From: Guillardia theta CCMP2712
Taxonomy: Eukaryota; Protista; Cryptophyta
DNA: 64,000 nucleotides
NCBI RefSeq assembly: GCF_000315625.1
Contig: NW_005434642.1
Location: 65,080-129,079 of the forward strand
Direction of reading: 5' to 3'
Shown here: positions 54,150 through 60,820 of the stretch, one piece after another
Position numbering within the stretch: the stretch's first letter is position 1
How the letters are laid out: every line of letters starts with the position of its first letter
Translations under genes and position numbers: made by a program
The notes under the pieces: model-generated
Told to the model about the DNA's origin: nothing
Databases searched by the model: none
The model's input: the letters and a program-made list of their open reading frames with translations, nothing else

Positions 54150-55950
54150 GAGATACTCTCTTTCATGCACCGGCGTCCTGCTGCCATACCGCAAATACCA
54201 AACGGTCGCTTGTGCGGATCGTTTTCGCTGCATTGGTCACAACAATAGGGTTCTGCGACCCTGGCCATGCAAATCTCTGCAGATCCTGCATCTAACTCGT
54301 GTCAATTTCCTGGTCCCATCACCTGGATGCATGGGAAGGTGCTTTCTCTCACAAAATTCGCTCACCAGTATCATGTCATGCGCTGCCTCCGACAATTGCG
54401 AGTCCTGCGAGTTTGAATCGAATGAAGAAGATTGTCAACCCCGAGCACTTCGATGCTTGTTTCTCCTCATTGCTTCACCTTCGTATTTATTTTGTACCAA
54501 TTGCAAAGCAAGCACGTTAATGAACTCGCTATGCTCAACAAAAGATTCTGAATCGCCAATCTGCAGTTCCAATAGAGTTTTCCATCCCCATATCAACCTG
54601 CCCGGGGTGATTGTGAACATCGATGGTCGAAGTTGCATCGAAATATTACTTCACCATCTTCGTTCTAGGCCCAGAAAAGTTGAAGTGTTCGGTCTGGTTG
54701 GTCTGTGCATTGATCATCCATCCATCTCTCACGTGTCCAACGGTTTCACGTGTTGAATTCCAAGTAGAAATCAAAAGCTTTCGTGGTGCACCAACCCCGC
54801 CACCTTCATTCCAGGCACGTCCGTACACCCTTTTTTCTCCATTGATCTGCACACTGAGCCTGACAATCTGAGTCAAGCCCTTAGATCATTGCTGTGCCAT
54901 CCTAACGTGCTCAGGTACTGTATATGTCCTTCGTTGAGATAATTGTGTGCCAACCTGAGCACCTCAGCTGTGTGCCTTTGCATACCTGTCCGAGAAAGGA
55001 AGGTCTTGCATCCGATCTTCACCTTCTTGAACGTCCAAGACATCTCGATCCCAAAAGTGCATTCAGCGATGTTCTTGTATTCTGTGCCCACCCCGACGGG
55101 CTTTCCTTGCATTTCCCGTCAGCTGAAGGATACTCTGGGCAGTATTCTACCGATCTCTGGGCAGTATTCTACCGATCAAAATCATTCAGAACACAAATCA
55201 CAGCCATATCCCAATCTTACTTGTATGTGAGGACGCCATTCCGACATACTCTCACTAATCATCAATTCACTTCCTGCGTTGATTGTCTGCAACCTGTTTT
55301 TATTGAAAGCTTCAACACGAGAACGAATCATGTCAAATCTGTTCTGAGGGACTGCCTGCCGATGATGGCCAGAACCTGAGATATCTATCCATGTTTCATA
55401 CCGGGTGTGGCTGATTCAAAACCTGGTCTCGACTTCCGACGAGGTGGAACAAAGCCATGGCGATTGCGACCCCACATGTACCTCATCCGGCCTTTTGGTT
55501 GCCACGTGCTACCGTAAAGAAGACCTATCAACTGAACCCATTCGTGCACCGTGATGGGTTGCATGTCTTGGGGCAAATCGTCGTCGGTCCAGAGCAAAGC
55601 AGCTGCTATGACTTCTGTTGGTCCCATAGAAAAACTCCCATGGAAGAAGGGATTGCCCGCATTCAATCTCAGGCTTCCACTCTAAAACTTTGACACACAC
55701 TGTATAGAGGAGGAATCTGAATTCAATTTATTGTCATCCCGCTCTTCAACGAGATTCTCATTATCTCCGGCCTTTTGCCACATCTTTTGCATCTTTTGTT
55801 CATTTTGTAGGATTAGACCTCCCAACAAGAACTGTAAACAGACTGCAGCGCCTGTATTGCATGTTTGCAATGACCCAACACCGTGCTTGTCACGTATATC
55901 TCCTGCCCTATCTTGAAGACTGTTCGGTTCCTGCAGAGCGAGTTTCAGCA
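54150..55950 (-). pseudogene. Degenerate piggyBac-like (PGBD/DDE_Tnp_1_7-type) transposase remnant
   Basis: Fragments ITVHEWVQLIGLLYG, MWGRNR, GKPVGVGTEYKNIAEC..GI, TAEVLRL, YFDATSTIDVHNH...MENSIGTADWRFRIF and a Cys-rich tail CCDQC..GICG..RC; many stops and frameshifts. Confidence 0.75.
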
Positions 55951-56126
55951 TTGGAACCCCCCCGTTGATCCCTGCTTCCAGTTGAAGCCATGGCGAAGTA
56001 CGAGCTATGTAGAGCTATGGGTTTATTGACTGAAATGAGTTTATGTCACGGCCCTCACTGTCACCAAAAGCTTTTAACTGCAGCGTGCGGGGGGTGGGGT
56101 GGTGGTACCGATACGTAGATACATTT

Positions 56127-56341
56127 ACGACTGTCACGAGGACGTTGGCATGGCAAGACCTCAGGAACCCAGCACAAGACGAGGACGAGGACAAGGATAA
56201 GAGTAAGAGCAGGAAGGATAAGAGCAATGAGAGCAGGGATAACGGTAAGAGCAAGGATCAGGACAAGAGTAAGAGCAAGGATAAGGACAAGAACGAAGTA
56301 AGAAACTAAGTCACCGTATCCTTTAGACCAGTGCACAAATA
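56127..56341 (+). repeat. Direct repeat copy 2, with an internal expanded 6-bp array (GACAAG/GATAAG/AGCAAG)
   Basis: Colinear with 53810-53944. Confidence 0.8.
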
Positions 56342-56547
56342 GTTGTAGGGAAGAGGAAGTAATAAGGAAGAAATGAACACAGAGAAGGTATGTAAGAAAG
56401 ATGGGTGATAAAATGTAGACAAAAATGTTTTTGTTTCAGGAATCGAAGGACATGCCAGAAAACATGAATCATTTAGCTGTTAAGAAGGCAAATTGGAGGG
56501 TGCAAGTTGTCATGTACTGACAGTCGAGCAGAACGCCCCCCGCTCAC

Positions 56548-59500
56548 ATGGGGCGCACGAAAAGCTTTGTGGCATCGCTCCCGAGCTTCCTTGTTCGGAA
56601 GAAGGCGCCGGCTGCAAGGCGATATTCACTGATAGAGCCTACGCTTGATCCACAGCTTCCTGTGTCCGGCCGCAGCCTTCACTGCTTCATCTATCGGCTG
56701 GACCCCCCTGGTGTGGTACAAGAGAAGGAGTCGCAGGTTGATCAGCCCAGGAGCGACGAGTTTTCAGCGCTGCTGCATCAGGCCATACACAACAGCCTCT
56801 CCTCACAATCACACAAGGTTTGGAAGATCTACCCCGGCAAGACTTACCTGGATGTTGACTGCATGCCTCTGCTCCTCCTGGAAGAAACTAGAACCTCAAA
56901 GGCCAAGTACTTATGCAACTGCTCCATCTTCGTGCCTCTCATCTCCTGGGGAAGTGCCCACAGTGTACTCGACGATCTTGCATGCATCCACTTCGACGGA
57001 GCAATCGATCAGGAAAGCCACTTCCTGGTTCACGCATTATGCGCCATTTACCTGCTTCAGAAGAAGGCAGGAAGGCTACAAACTATCATGCCAATCACGC
57101 GGGACGAGTCAAGGGGGAAGGTCAGCATGGCAGAAGCCTGCCGACGGCTCAGCACAAAGCCATCGATACCAAGCTGCAAGCGAGCCTGCGTGCTGCTGCA
57201 GGAAGGAGGCGTCGAGATGGGGCAGGGAGTGATTCTCAGTTTTCTTCTGGGCATCTCCGTACGTGATGCAGTGATGATGCTTATGCCGTCGAACTGGAGA
57301 GAAGAAGCTCTACCGGACTGGGAGCCGGCAGGAGGTCTGACAACCAAGAATTCGTACAGCCTGTACAATGTGAAAATCGAAGGGAACGATAAAGTCAGTG
57401 CAAGCGAGGCTGCAGAGATGATCGTAGACTGTCTGGTGAAGGTGCTCAAGGAACATGTAGAGAAAAAGCTGTGGGAGTTTACAAACCACAACCCACGTGG
57501 AATTGAGCTGCTGAAACTGCTACGAGAGTCAGGGATATATGACAAATTCGACAAGTACTTTGCGCTGCGAGGAATCGAGTCCCTCCATCAAGTGCCGAGC
57601 TTCACTCGCGGCTCTCCGTCCAATGGAAGCAAGAGGGAGCAAGTGGTCCACCGGCCATGCAGTGACATCACAGCTTACAACGCGTCAGACGAAGGGTCGA
57701 TCCGAGCGCTGGAAAGGCTCGTGGAGGACCACCGGGACGATGAGCGCTTCCTCCCCTTGCAGGAGCGTCTCAACCGCTACCGTGACTCAGAGGTTGATGG
57801 CATCCTGGCCCTCCGCACCACCAACTCAATCGAGACAGCCATGGTGAAGCTGCCGGCGCGATGCTGCGTCCTCTGGCTGAGTATGGTGTACCTTGTCTTC
57901 GGGATCAACCAGCTCGGCCCTCTCTTCACCGAGCAGATCTGGTTGCCAGAGAAGAACTCTACCACTCCAGTGCAGCCCAAGACAGTGAGAATCGCCAAGG
58001 TTGCAGCGCCAGTTATCAGCTTCTACTGGTCTTTCTTGTTCGTTGCAGGCGTCATCGTCGGGCAGGTCAGCACGCCGCTACGAGCCAAGTGGCTGATGCT
58101 GTTCGCGGGCCATCTAGTCATTGCCGGCAACGTCTTCAGCTTCATCGTAGATAGCATTCAGTGCTCGGTGGAGGGGACAGGGATCGGACCTAACTGCAAT
58201 GCTTACACGCTCATCCCTTCCATTGCGGTGATGTCGTTTGTGATGTACCTTGCTCATAGAGTTCAGCACTACTTCTGGATGGCTGCCTTCTTCCTCCAGG
58301 GCCTCTACTGCTTTTACTGCATTTACGCTTTCCCTGCTGACAGCGTGGACTTGAAGATCGGGCTCGGAATGTGTCTGTTCCTGGCCATTGGCTGCTGCTT
58401 CATCGCCATCGCCATCATCGTCCAGTACCGCCGCTCCTATAGACAAACATTGAGGGAACTGCAGACGGTCATGCAAGGCTTTGACGACACCTGGCAGAAG
58501 ATAGAGGAGGAGAACAAGCAGAGCATCGCGGCAGTGAGCGTTCAAGCACGCGAGATCGCGCAAGAGCTGCAGGCAGTGGTGAAGGAAGACTTCAAGACGT
58601 GGGGGAGGTGGCTCTCAGCGATGGCGGGATGGCGAAGGGCGAGGTACTCGACAACGGACTCAAAGATCCGGCAGGAGAGCAGAGACATCGAGAAGCTGTT
58701 CCAGGAGGCGCAGGAGATCAGCGCTGCCTTCCAGCTGTGGGTGTCAGCTTGGAACCAGGTCGGCAGAGTACAGCATGGGAACGTGAAATCTTGTGCGCGA
58801 GCGATACAGAAGACCGTGAGATCGTACGGGCGAGACCCTTCCTGCTTGACGGACCTGGTCCGATGCACTATCCTAGTGCAGTCGATGGAGGAGGTGCAGG
58901 AGTGGCTGAGCTGCTTCCGCCGCATCTCGGTGGTCGGTTATGGGGTGAGCGCGAGGGACAGGAGAAGAGCAAGCGACGTAGCCCCTGAGGACGTGGAGGT
59001 ACGCGAAGAGAGGAGGAGCGGAACGTGGAGATGAAAGTGAACTGCAGATGGGAGGGCGGGAGATCTTCATGAGCGTCACGAGCATCAAGAACCGGTGAAA
59101 GCAGGCGAGGGATTGGAATATGCCTGAAGCTCCGATTTCCAGCTATGATCCCCGATACGATGCCAGATTGAGCGGAGGTTACCGAGATATGTGCATCTGC
59201 GTAGAGGAAAGAGATGAGCGAGGTGGGTGGGAGAGCTGACGAGTAGACTGGCAGGTGGGATGGACGATAGACGAAGCGAGTCAAACTTGCATGTTTGTGC
59301 CTGTGAGGGAGTGGGGAAAGATGGAAGTTCGGAAACACATCTGCGAAATCCAGGTGAAAGACGCTGTCAGCAGCAGGAGTGGAGGCGGGAAGAGAAACGA
59401 GCGGTGCAGGGCAAGTGCGAGCCCTGCATGGAGGAGTGGAAGAGACGAGGGGAGAGGCGAGAGAATGAAGCGACAGGACAAGAAGGGGACTGAGAAAACA

Positions 59501-59741
59501 TATCAGTAGAGGCGAAGCGGGGAAATGGTGGGGAGGGTACGGACGAAGATACGAGGAGAGCTATGCCAGAGCTGGAGGGGGAGAGGGAGTGTACAGGAAG
59601 AGAGGGGAAAGGAGGGAGTGCATAAGTGGAGACGGAGGGAGAGCTCTGAGATTGCTTCAGGTGTTGCTAGAAGTGATGCAAGGAGTGAAGAAGGTGTTGC
59701 ACAAGGAGTACGTGAACTTCCGCAACATCATGTGCCAGTGA
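56548..59741 (+). CDS. TIR-like + SAM-like + 6TM + RelA/SpoT-like nucleotidyltransferase fusion protein; exons about 56548-58998, 59048-59094, 59143-59200, 59255-59353, 59661-59741
   Basis: 828-aa first ORF, then GT-AG splicing gives IKNRYDPRYDARLSGGYRD, KHICEIQ/VLL, LHKEYVNFRN; also VKSCARAIQK and LTDLVRCTI. Six hydrophobic helices. Confidence 0.75.
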
Positions 59742-59829
59742 AGAAGTTTGTTGTGAATATCTAAAGACGCCAAGAGGCTCTCAAGAGACTGACATGAAGC
59801 AGAGGAGGACAAGTAAGCTTGAGTCTTCC

Positions 59830-60820
59830 CTCAGCTTTGCACACCACAAGCACGCGATAGCCGCAGTGCTCCTGCCACCCTCACGTGAACTTCACCCCCA
59901 CATGTCTGTGTGTGCTGACAGGTCTTCACTTTGCATGGCATGTCACTGAATCCTCCGATGCCAAGAAGAAATTGGGAACCAACAAGCTCGTTAAATGTTG
60001 TAGATGATACGAGAATTGAAACATCGAATGTTCAAAAGATTTTCGAGCCCCATGTTGTCACCAACCGAATTCATCTTCTCTCACTTTGCGAAACTTCAAG
60101 TTCTGCCACTCGCCGGCGCAAAAACGACAGCTCTTCTTGGAGCGAATCGTTTGTGGACATGCTTGTATCACCGTAATTGGTCACCCGCGTCTCATCCCGA
60201 GTCGAAGTCGATATGTATGATTGAGAGAGCTCAGAAAGGCTGGCTTTTGCAAACTGCTTTTGTATCTGTCTTGTGGTCATGCAGAGTACAAGGACAGACA
60301 GCACAGTACCTGGACGCTACGTTGTTGCTTAATCATAGTGCTCCGTAGACGGCGCGCGACGCCCTGCTGTTCGTTGCTTTCATTCTTGAAGGAAGACATA
60401 TATCGCTCCTTGTTTTTGAGCATATTCCTCGTATTGAATAGCAGAACCTGACGCGAGCACTAAGTCTGCAGTACAAACCCAAGCTCTTGATACCTGCATG
60501 TCCACCACAGCTGCCCCTGAGATCTCTTTCTCAAACTCGATCCCATTTTGAACAACAGCAGCGATGTCGTCGATTGCTTTCTTCATCTTTGTCGCCAGGG
60601 TAGTCTCATTCTTCAGCGCGGCGATGTAGTCATCCACGTTCTCCTGCAGCTCCTTCACTACCTCCTGGGGCGGTACCGTTCTATTGGCACGGAAGTCCTC
60701 CCCAGAAGTCCCCGCAGGCCTTGTATCAGTCAGTGTTGGCTCCACAATCACCTTGAAGGAAAGAGGGATCCTCTCCTCTCCCAGTCTCGACGTGCTGTTC
60801 ATGCCCCCCAAATGTCTCAA
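59830..60820 (-). CDS. Hypothetical helical protein (multi-exon; ends uncertain)
   Basis: ORFs 60380-60820 and 60071-60304 with protein-like amphipathic content and intron-like spacers. Confidence 0.4.

Follow-up and report, generated by a model that had tools for sequence, protein, structure and literature searches.

Enzymes of the RelA/SpoT type are known in eukaryotes mainly as plastid (p)ppGpp enzymes and as uncharacterized effector domains of fungal NOD-like receptors (NLRs). The small alarmone synthetases (SAS) are homotetramers making (p)ppGpp, and CapRel and FaRel2 are bacterial or phage-defense proteins under the control of antitoxin domains. Proteins of the SARM1 type oligomerize through their SAM and TIR domains, and in SARM1 itself the oligomerization brought about by SAM puts in place an enzymatic activity that uses up a nucleotide pool. 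Among (p)ppApp synthetases, the phage enzyme Apk2 is grouped with Tas1/Apk1, a type VI secretion toxin of Pseudomonas aeruginosa. Tas1, an effector of bacteria, is soluble, carries a PAAR domain for delivery and is paired with an immunity protein, Tis1; it pyrophosphorylates AMP, ADP and ATP and kills through depletion of ATP and ADP, and nucleotide profiling has been reported for both Tas1 and BcTas1 (PMC10083569). In fungal NLRs, RelA_SpoT is a presumed effector domain (PMC4986451). Here we present a computational analysis of GUITHDRAFT_108018, a gene of the cryptophyte Guillardia theta CCMP2712 that lies within a 64,000-nucleotide stretch of contig NW_005434642.1 (positions 65,080 to 129,079 of the forward strand; hereafter the window, in which positions are counted from its first letter). 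The gene very probably encodes a six-pass membrane protein with a TIR domain, a SAM domain and a RelA/SpoT-fold synthetase domain in the cytosol.

The annotation describes the product as a hypothetical protein of 978 residues (P0001), and residue numbers quoted for it follow that model. A preliminary description of the window, made from the letters alone, had proposed a TIR-SAM-six-helix-synthetase polypeptide, and all of the motifs that it quoted are present, either in the 828-residue open reading frame (ORF) on the plus strand at 56548-59034 or in exons downstream of it. Chance can be excluded as the source of this arrangement, because about 14 paralogues of G. theta and transcripts of Hanusia phi repeat it at full length, and because an exhaustive profile search from five cryptophyte synthetase domains returned 684 cluster representatives at E<=1e-3 (213 at E<=1e-10). 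The preliminary description knew of no characterized protein built in this way; our full-text literature searches likewise found no description of a TIR-SAM-transmembrane-RelA/SpoT architecture, of a eukaryotic Tas1-like family or of GUITHDRAFT_108018 itself.

The predicted C-terminal enzyme

When residues 765-978 were compared with the sequences of the PDB by phmmer, Tas1 (6OX6) was the best match, at a marginal E of 0.018, over VKSCARAIQK...TDLVRCTILV. The family profile matched Tas1 at E 5.5e-8 over 79 residues, followed by the small alarmone synthetase YwaC at E 0.18, and the profile alignment pairs the family Asp (D70) with YwaC D87 and GYRD with GYRS. In a 37-sequence alignment of the full domain, K48, R52, K56, R59, D70, R73, R148 and E184 do not vary and Q186 hardly does; the consensus motifs are RGPVKxPxRAxQKxVRxYxRD, LTDLVRCT, KNRFD, GYRD, EVGW, HICExQ and HxxYVxxRN. 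The motif set of RelA/SpoT homologues (RSH), namely K-x3-[S/R]-x3-K, a Mg-binding Asp with Arg, G-Y-R and E-x-Q, is present in the family; in RelSeq and the SAS enzymes these residues have catalytic or ATP-binding roles. In GUITHDRAFT_108018 the codons of the catalytic motifs lie at 58786-58788 (Lys of VKS), 58852-58854 (Asp of TDLVR) and 59345-59347 (Glu of ICEIQ), with GGYRD in exon 3. No match to RelA_SpoT (PF04607) was found in GUITHDRAFT_108018 or its close paralogues even at E 10, nor at the locus in a genome scan; among the relatives, 8 of the 37 members have sub-threshold matches, the best at 25.4 bits against a cutoff of 27.

The predicted structure points the same way. An AlphaFold2 (AF2) model made from the 37-sequence alignment reached a predicted local distance difference test score (pLDDT) of 85.2 and a predicted template modeling score (pTM) of 0.80. 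All of its top 50 Foldseek matches against the PDB were RSH synthetases (SAS1, SAS2, Tas1, FaRel2, an exported Streptomyces SAS and Rel), the lowest E being 1.7e-5. With VIA-align, Z was 13.7 for SAS1, 10.5 for CapRel, 10.4 for Tas1, which had the highest identity at 25%, and 8-10 for Rel/SpoT, with Pol-X nucleotidyltransferases at about 7.5 only. The RelA/SpoT-like C-terminus claimed in the preliminary description is therefore matched in both structure and profile, and the family is also, as had been suggested there, separate from the plastid RSH enzymes and much more divergent. Judged by its residues and its modeled fold, the domain is a pyrophosphokinase of the RelA/SpoT fold that has diverged yet kept all of its catalytic residues, and its nearest sequence relative is Tas1; we consider it likely to be active.

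The N-terminal region, a probable scaffold

By sequence, the N-terminal module is confined to the paralogues of G. theta and to Hanusia phi, where it invariably accompanies the transmembrane (TM) and enzyme modules. Its fold was predicted with AF2 for residues 105-520 of P0001, from a 16-sequence alignment that included divergent paralogues. In an exhaustive VIA-align search with this model, TIR domains accounted for nine of the ten chains at Z>=8, including RPP1 (Z 10.5, 158/166 aligned), RPS4 (10.2) and SARM1 (9.5) as well as IL-1RAcPb and IL-18Rbeta, and the neighbors of the model in a structural atlas were mostly TIR_2 clusters. Neither Pfam TIR nor TIR_2 matched in GUITHDRAFT_108018, a genome-wide TIR_2 scan returned about 20 other loci and not this one, and the N-terminal family profile matched nothing among the PDB sequences.

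A link to canonical TIR domains was found through more distant proteins, which a local hidden Markov model of the juxtamembrane and TM module showed to have it ahead of the same enzyme domain. The consensus of their N-termini resembles a classic TIR domain (MISYR, KVFLDExCLxxGExW, VFVPLLSW, VDNVLLE, IxPxFVGEK), and two of them, P0049 and P0056, score above the Pfam TIR_2 cutoff of 28 bits (34.6 and 29.4), with sub-cutoff SAM_1 matches following. In hhalign comparisons the TIR-like module of GUITHDRAFT_108018 is linked to the N-termini of these relatives at 97.9% (E 5.4e-13), and these in turn to the TIR_2 regions of P0049 (99.4%, E 3.8e-21) and P0056 (98.3%, E 1.5e-14); profile comparison of the relatives' N-termini with the canonical TIR_2 of G. 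theta gave 36% (E 3.7e-4). The column of the NADase catalytic Glu, which is kept in the canonical TIR_2 of G. theta (NCRRE), in P0049 (NVLME) and in the intermediate relatives (NVLLE), holds His in GUITHDRAFT_108018 (FLVHAL; codon 57031-57033) and H, Y, L, S or E among the paralogues. Because the Glu is replaced, this TIR domain is probably a scaffold and not an enzyme.

The segment that follows was aligned by hhalign, over 84 columns, with the equivalent segments of relatives (96.2%, E 2.3e-9), and these match Pfam SAM_1 or SAM_2 at 40-70 residues ahead of the TM module (in P0027, SAM_2 at 21.1 bits against a cutoff of 20.5). VIA-align placed the SAM domain of tankyrase-1 on model residues 280-361 with 60/63 residues aligned, a root-mean-square deviation of 2.3 Å and a Z of 6.4, which is modest for a small helical domain; an insertion of about 25 residues in the SAM-like domain is poorly modeled, with low confidence. 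Pfam SAM_1 and SAM_2 gave no match in GUITHDRAFT_108018, and a profile of the segment found no SAM domain among the PDB sequences, its weak matches there (F-BAR/PACSIN-type proteins and a septin) being taken as chance. A complex prediction for two SAM-like copies, run with no controls or alignment, returned a score of 0.00 and an uncertain fold, and bears neither way on self-association. Taking the alignments and predicted folds together, we conclude that the TIR and SAM assignments of the preliminary description were right and that both domains appear strongly diverged.

The membrane module

Six hydrophobic segments are seen both in the hydropathy profile of the single protein and in the family average. 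The loop between TM2 and TM3 is basic (mean K+R 2.1, D+E 0), as is the segment after TM6 (mean K+R 3.8), and the segment before TM1 is mildly so. The TM1-TM2 loop, about 30 residues long in GUITHDRAFT_108018, holds an NST sequon, and the TM3-TM4 loop is acidic with a conserved Cys pair. Hydropathy and loop charges thus place the TIR, SAM and enzyme domains in the cytosol, and a six-helix topology with both termini inside is supported, in keeping with the earlier count of six helices and its placement of both termini on the same side. Immediately ahead of TM1 lies a juxtamembrane motif of 37 residues that is the most conserved segment of the family (72% mean pairwise identity) and recurs in the distant relatives; mean identity is 68% for the enzyme domain and 41-45% for the TIR, SAM, TM and linker regions.

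A search of the structural atlas with the TM module returned generic small helical membrane proteins only, all with TM-scores of at most 0.38 by query. Pfam matches to DUF948, SLATT_6, Occludin_ELL and TMEM120 over TM6 and the charged linker are taken as compositional and not as homology; the weak SLATT_6 match is limited to GUITHDRAFT_108018 and is found in none of the paralogues. In the relatives P0049 and P0144 the TM1-TM2 loop is about 280-300 residues long and contains an F5/8-type-C (discoidin) domain, which by its position would give these proteins a receptor-like ectodomain facing outward. Of the 'membrane receptor' in the preliminary description, then, the membrane part stands, and the word receptor suits some of these discoidin-loop relatives better, since GUITHDRAFT_108018 has no ectodomain.

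Gene structure and transcripts

Four transcript runs were compared against positions 55700-60400, with boundaries resolved by script. In spliced contigs from three independent studies (X1, X2 and X3) exon 1 is joined to four downstream exons, so that transcripts continue beyond 59034, as the spliced C-terminus of the preliminary description had implied. Joining the exons preserves the reading frame; the only stop is the terminal one at 59739-59741, and the product has 913 residues. The ATG at 56548 is the first in-frame ATG downstream of an in-frame stop within the transcript, and both ends proposed earlier, 56548 and 59741, were thus exact. The 5' untranslated region (UTR), at least 394 nt long, carries the in-frame stop ahead of the start codon and nine upstream ATGs with short upstream ORFs, and a leader so rich in these could serve translational control. 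The coordinates of all features are collected in Table 1.

Table 1. Features of GUITHDRAFT_108018 and its product in the window
Feature	Positions	Strand	Remarks and basis
5' UTR	56154..56547	+	unspliced; X1 contig contiguous over 56154-58996
Coding exon 1	56548..58998	+	817 codons: TIR-like, SAM-like, juxtamembrane motif, six TM helices, linker, first half of synthetase
Intron 1	58999..59047	+	49 nt, GT..AG; joint in X1, X2, X3
Coding exon 2	59048..59094	+	encodes ..FMSVTSIKNR; transcripts
Intron 2	59095..59142	+	48 nt, GT..AG
Coding exon 3	59143..59206	+	YDPRYDARLSGGYRDMCICVE; ends 6 nt beyond the end in the public gene model
Intron 3	59207..59254	+	48 nt, non-canonical GA..AG; joint in X1, X2, X3
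Coding exon 4	59255..59353	+	VGWT...HICEIQ
Intron 4	59354..59660	+	307 nt, GT..AG
Coding exon 5	59661..59741	+	VLLEVMQGVKKVLHKEYVNFRNIMCQ and TGA stop
Divergent TIR-fold domain (predicted)	56674..57474	+	residues ~110-376; AF2 model, VIA-align, hhalign chain
SAM-like helical domain (predicted)	57484..57741	+	residues ~380-465; VIA-align, hhalign
Juxtamembrane motif	57742..57852	+	DERFLPL..RL..YRD..VDGILALR..NS.ET; alignments
Six TM helices (predicted)	57853..58431	+	residues 507-523, 556-572, 583-599, 623-639, 645-661, 676-692
Charged helical linker, TM6 to enzyme domain	58432..58683	+	inferred; 'coiled coil' of the preliminary description
Tas1-like RelA/SpoT-fold nucleotide pyrophosphokinase domain (predicted)	58684..59738	+	split over five exons; AF2, Foldseek, VIA-align, profiles

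In two places the transcripts show the public gene model to be wrong. That model starts in a Lys/Asp/Ser-rich low-complexity ORF (KDKSKS...) in the region 56043-56547, which it splices into the main ORF; we reject the resulting N-terminal extension (MDLRNPAQ...), since it requires an intron where the transcript is unspliced (56154-58996) and in-frame stops are present. At intron 3 the public model uses a GT that lies 6 bases too early, which deletes the 'EV' of CICVEVGWT, two residues that are kept in all paralogues and in the wider family (GYRDxxLNxEVGW). Four placements of intron 3 are compatible with the transcript joint, all listed by script, and none of them gives GT..AG. A further joint, 59096->59698 with GA..GT ends, was set aside; it comes from short X2 and X3 contigs that cover 59076-59096 and 59698-59726 with long unmatched ends, and is probably a paralogue transcript or an assembly chimera.

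A convergent gene lies on the minus strand at 59733-60400, with an intron at 60266-60309 (CT..AC on the plus strand). At 59733 and 60055 there are poly-T loose ends, suggestive of poly(A) sites of this neighbor, so that its 3' end overlaps the last coding exon and the 3' UTR of GUITHDRAFT_108018; one transcript contig spans both genes. The short reads of the raw RNA-Seq run X18 barely touch GUITHDRAFT_108018, and most of those in the region belong to the minus-strand neighbor, in keeping with their accumulation at 59.7-60.3 kb and with their poly-T loose ends.

Relatives in cryptophytes and their domain partners

The relatives that carry a species name all come from cryptophytes (Guillardia, Hanusia, Baffinella and Rhodomonas; one labeled 'Proteo' we read as Proteomonas), and many further ones come from metagenomes or transcriptomes. 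The structural atlas also returned look-alikes from other protists, which are at most candidate homologues. The preliminary description had called for a count of paralogues, and in G. theta those with the same full-length architecture include three copies at C37:146475-157753, an inverted pair at C4:1071672-1079226 and a divergent pair at C117:82718-89258. Some paralogues look truncated or interrupted, for example C37:155651-157753 and C284. There is also a second, longer subfamily with ORFs of 1060-1090 residues.

Beyond these full-length paralogues, the TM and synthetase module is recombined in relatives with canonical TIR_2, with SAM, with discoidin, and with HEPN and kinase domains. P0046, of 1443 residues, combines a HEPN_DZIP3-like region and a protein kinase with the same juxtamembrane and TM module and a Tas1-like domain, and near-identical copies of it occur on many ENA metagenome contigs (P0167-P0179). 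Proteins of 1300-1560 residues with up to four Tas1-like stretches were also seen: P0067 (GUITHDRAFT_121010), P0182 (GUITHDRAFT_121009), P0080 (GUITHDRAFT_121390), P0087, P0093 and P0119. From their sequences, these may hold tandem repeats of the enzyme domain; in UniRef, P0067 and P0182 bear the name 'RelA/SpoT domain-containing protein'.

Canonical members of the same superfamilies are present elsewhere in the G. theta genome, with about 20 TIR_2 loci and two long RSH genes (contigs C47 and C24). ORFs of about 1200-1370 residues with an N-terminal canonical TIR_2 lie on contigs C150, C149, C23, C92, C184, C221, C228, C33, C72 and C19 (L019-L028). In this set the identity to the reference copy is 61-93% for nine of the ten TIR regions, and those on C149 and C23 score identically. 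This suggests a gene family that expanded recently and that has no sequence relation to the TIR-like module of GUITHDRAFT_108018.

Discussion

Our data lead us to favor, if by no means firmly, a membrane-bound TIR-SAM scaffold that holds a Tas1-like enzyme as an effector of conflict, stress or cell death. Like SAM and TIR in SARM1, the TIR and SAM domains would probably act as self-association scaffolds, and they would hold the enzyme domains at a membrane. Once the membrane module or the cytosolic scaffold had sensed a trigger, the synthetase domains would adopt an active arrangement, with control by the scaffold passing to the enzyme through the juxtamembrane motif and the helical linker. 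Pyrophosphate from ATP would then be passed by the enzyme to a nucleotide 3'-OH, with an adenine nucleotide as the likeliest acceptor and (p)ppApp as the product, and the outcome could be ATP drain, growth arrest or a signal, as suits an effector of conflict, stress or cell death and not housekeeping alarmone metabolism. Activation by oligomerization, which is argued by analogy, is a tentative part of this proposal.

An effector role in conflict or stress is favored because the paralogues have expanded, because the module has been shuffled with TIR_2, discoidin, HEPN and kinase domains, and because no stand-alone hydrolase was found; the variability of scaffold, TM and linker next to a conserved juxtamembrane motif and enzyme counts as further context of the conflict type. 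An immune or conflict-type role seems to us, on balance, the better supposition. Since the closest relative is the (p)ppApp toxin Tas1, the output may be toxic or ATP-depleting rather than a reversible messenger. One could go further and suppose that triggering makes these cryptophyte membrane enzymes release (p)ppApp, or another 3'-pyrophosphorylated nucleotide related to it, into the cytosol in large amounts, as the first eukaryotic non-plastid alarmone-type system and one wired to TIR and SAM immune scaffolds, with the trigger acting in some members through the discoidin ectodomain, and that they act as abortive-infection or programmed-death effectors or as a new second-messenger pathway; that combined claim we regard as doubtful.

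The preliminary description had read the protein differently, as a receptor that makes a nucleotide messenger upon clustering. Taken as a reversible second-messenger enzyme comparable to a membrane adenylyl cyclase, it would make (p)ppGpp or another pyrophosphorylated nucleotide, either in the cytosol or at a boundary of the periplastid compartment or plastid; downstream proteins would read this signal and a hydrolase would remove it. This reading would agree with the (p)ppGpp-making SAS enzymes being the best overall structural matches, with the conservation of the acceptor-stacking Tyr of GYRD, with the relatives whose outward TM1-TM2 loop holds a discoidin domain and which resemble true receptors, and with the hydrolase domains carried by the plastid-type RSH genes of G. 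theta. However, Tas1, the only significant relative in sequence, is a toxin, and a family that has expanded and been shuffled with TIR, HEPN and kinase domains looks more like a conflict system. The hydrolase is a further difficulty: a six-frame search of the G. theta genome, which may miss intron-rich genes, found no stand-alone cytosolic HD_4 alarmone hydrolase, and the only detectable HD_4 domains are those of the two canonical long RSH genes. To our knowledge, moreover, there is no eukaryotic cytosolic receptor for (p)ppGpp or (p)ppApp. A 2022 review (PMC10107265) states that there is no report of (p)ppApp from plants or algae, and this too speaks against a messenger, which we hold to be improbable.

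A second bacterial precedent for the enzyme would make it a blocker of translation, which once triggered halts protein synthesis by pyrophosphorylating the 3' CCA end of tRNA in the manner of the toxSAS CapRel and FaRel2. These proteins are indeed among the structural matches (CapRel with Z of 10.3-10.5), and the invariant basic residues (K, R, K, R, R) could bind RNA. The similarity in sequence is nevertheless to Tas1 and not to CapRel or FaRel2, and tethering to the membrane by a short linker would suit a small-molecule substrate better than tRNA, so that we find tRNA as the substrate distinctly improbable. More improbable still is that the scaffold has been mis-assigned, with a generic flavodoxin-like alpha/beta domain and a helical bundle, neither akin in function to TIR or SAM, serving as the lineage-specific regulatory part of a membrane-anchored RSH enzyme, or that the enzyme itself is a non-catalytic pseudo-enzyme. 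Such a mis-assignment would account for the lack of a direct Pfam or profile match to TIR or SAM, for the low-confidence beta-B region and for the missing catalytic Glu, and Z values of 6-10 are possible for common folds. The near-exclusive TIR identity of the chains at Z>=8, with nearly full-length alignment, argues against it, as do the transitive hhalign links to regions that pass Pfam TIR_2 and, for SAM, the link to Pfam-SAM-positive segments at the same position. The pseudo-enzyme variant is countered by the invariance of all the catalytic residues of the synthetase.

Several observations weigh against the scaffold-and-effector interpretation that we favor. No Pfam or NCBIfam model reached threshold for any of the three cytosolic domains of GUITHDRAFT_108018, and scans of the ORF, the annotated protein, seven family members and isolated segments gave no RelA_SpoT, TIR or SAM match. 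The N-terminal AF2 model is moderate (pLDDT 65, pTM 0.65; 72-91 in the core) with a weak beta-B region, and Foldseek found no match for it at E<=1e-3, the TIR rows coming at E 0.2-0.4. Compared directly in hhalign, the TIR-like module reached 0.3% with the canonical TIR_2 of G. theta and 4.6% with the TIR region of P0049, the latter in the right register and neither significant; because of this, the TIR assignment rests on the predicted fold and the transitive chain. On the side of the enzyme, the significant Tas1 alignment spans the N-terminal half of the domain only, and overall structural similarity is greater to the (p)ppGpp-making SAS enzymes than to Tas1. An adenine nucleotide as acceptor, plausible as it is, therefore falls a little short of probable. 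The genome search that returned no stand-alone hydrolase was a six-frame one, with the limit given above, and the outward loops of GUITHDRAFT_108018 are short.

Each module of the protein is already of a known kind, and a RelA_SpoT effector in eukaryotic immune-type proteins has its precedent in fungi; what appears to be new is the combination. That GUITHDRAFT_108018 marks a genuinely new eukaryotic nucleotide-effector pathway is a realistic chance, though less likely than not. It does define an expressed and expanded cryptophyte family in which a predicted Tas1-like pyrophosphokinase follows TIR and SAM domains in a six-pass membrane protein, and the family raises several testable questions: whether toxin-type alarmone synthetases take part in eukaryotic immunity or cell death, whether algae have a cytosolic pool of (p)ppApp or (p)ppGpp, by what route a bacterial conflict enzyme was domesticated into a membrane receptor architecture, and what role degenerate, non-catalytic TIR domains play outside animals and plants. 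The public gene model, furthermore, is corrected at both ends, and a non-canonical GA..AG intron is documented.

Comparison with known systems

The plastid-type RSH proteins of algae and plants belong to the same enzyme superfamily as the domain described here, but their HD_4 and RelA_SpoT domains pass the Pfam thresholds and they have no TIR or SAM. SAS1/RelQ and SAS2/RelP are the best overall structural matches (Z 11.8-13.7 over about 145-153 aligned residues, at 11-15% identity) and share with the family the catalytic Asp as well as the GYR and ExQ motifs; unlike GUITHDRAFT_108018, they are soluble, single-domain enzymes. CapRel and FaRel2 of the toxSAS group have the RSH fold and are effectors of conflict systems, and no significant sequence similarity to them was found. 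With the class III adenylyl cyclases of six TM helices there is an analogy only, in that a six-helix module is followed by a helical linker and a nucleotide-converting domain, with no relation in sequence or fold.

Closer in organization are two eukaryotic systems. As in fungal NLRs, a RelA/SpoT-type domain is the presumed enzymatic output of an immune-type multidomain protein. The fungal proteins are soluble and consist of NACHT or NB-ARC modules with repeats, and their RelA_SpoT domain is N-terminal and detectable with Pfam, whereas GUITHDRAFT_108018 has no NOD module and its domain, undetected by Pfam, is C-terminal, behind six TM helices. SARM1/TIR-1 (ARM-SAM-SAM-TIR) also has SAM and TIR in one polypeptide, and the TIR domain of SARM1 is among the structural matches listed above. 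In GUITHDRAFT_108018, by contrast, TIR precedes SAM and the protein is an integral membrane protein; moreover, since its TIR domain lacks the catalytic Glu, the nucleotide-consuming output would be the RSH domain and not TIR.

Finally, among proteins of solved structure Tas1/Apk1 alone resembles the family significantly in sequence. No PAAR or MuF delivery domain was found in GUITHDRAFT_108018 by Pfam scans and no immunity partner was detected for it, its immediate neighbor being the convergent gene. Unlike Tas1, GUITHDRAFT_108018 is eukaryotic, contains introns and is embedded in the membrane together with TIR and SAM modules. The two have a signature in common, P-[IV]-K-x3-R-A-x-Q-K ... D-L-x-R, which differs from the K-x3-S-x3-K ... 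D-x2-G-x-R form of the SAS and Rel enzymes.

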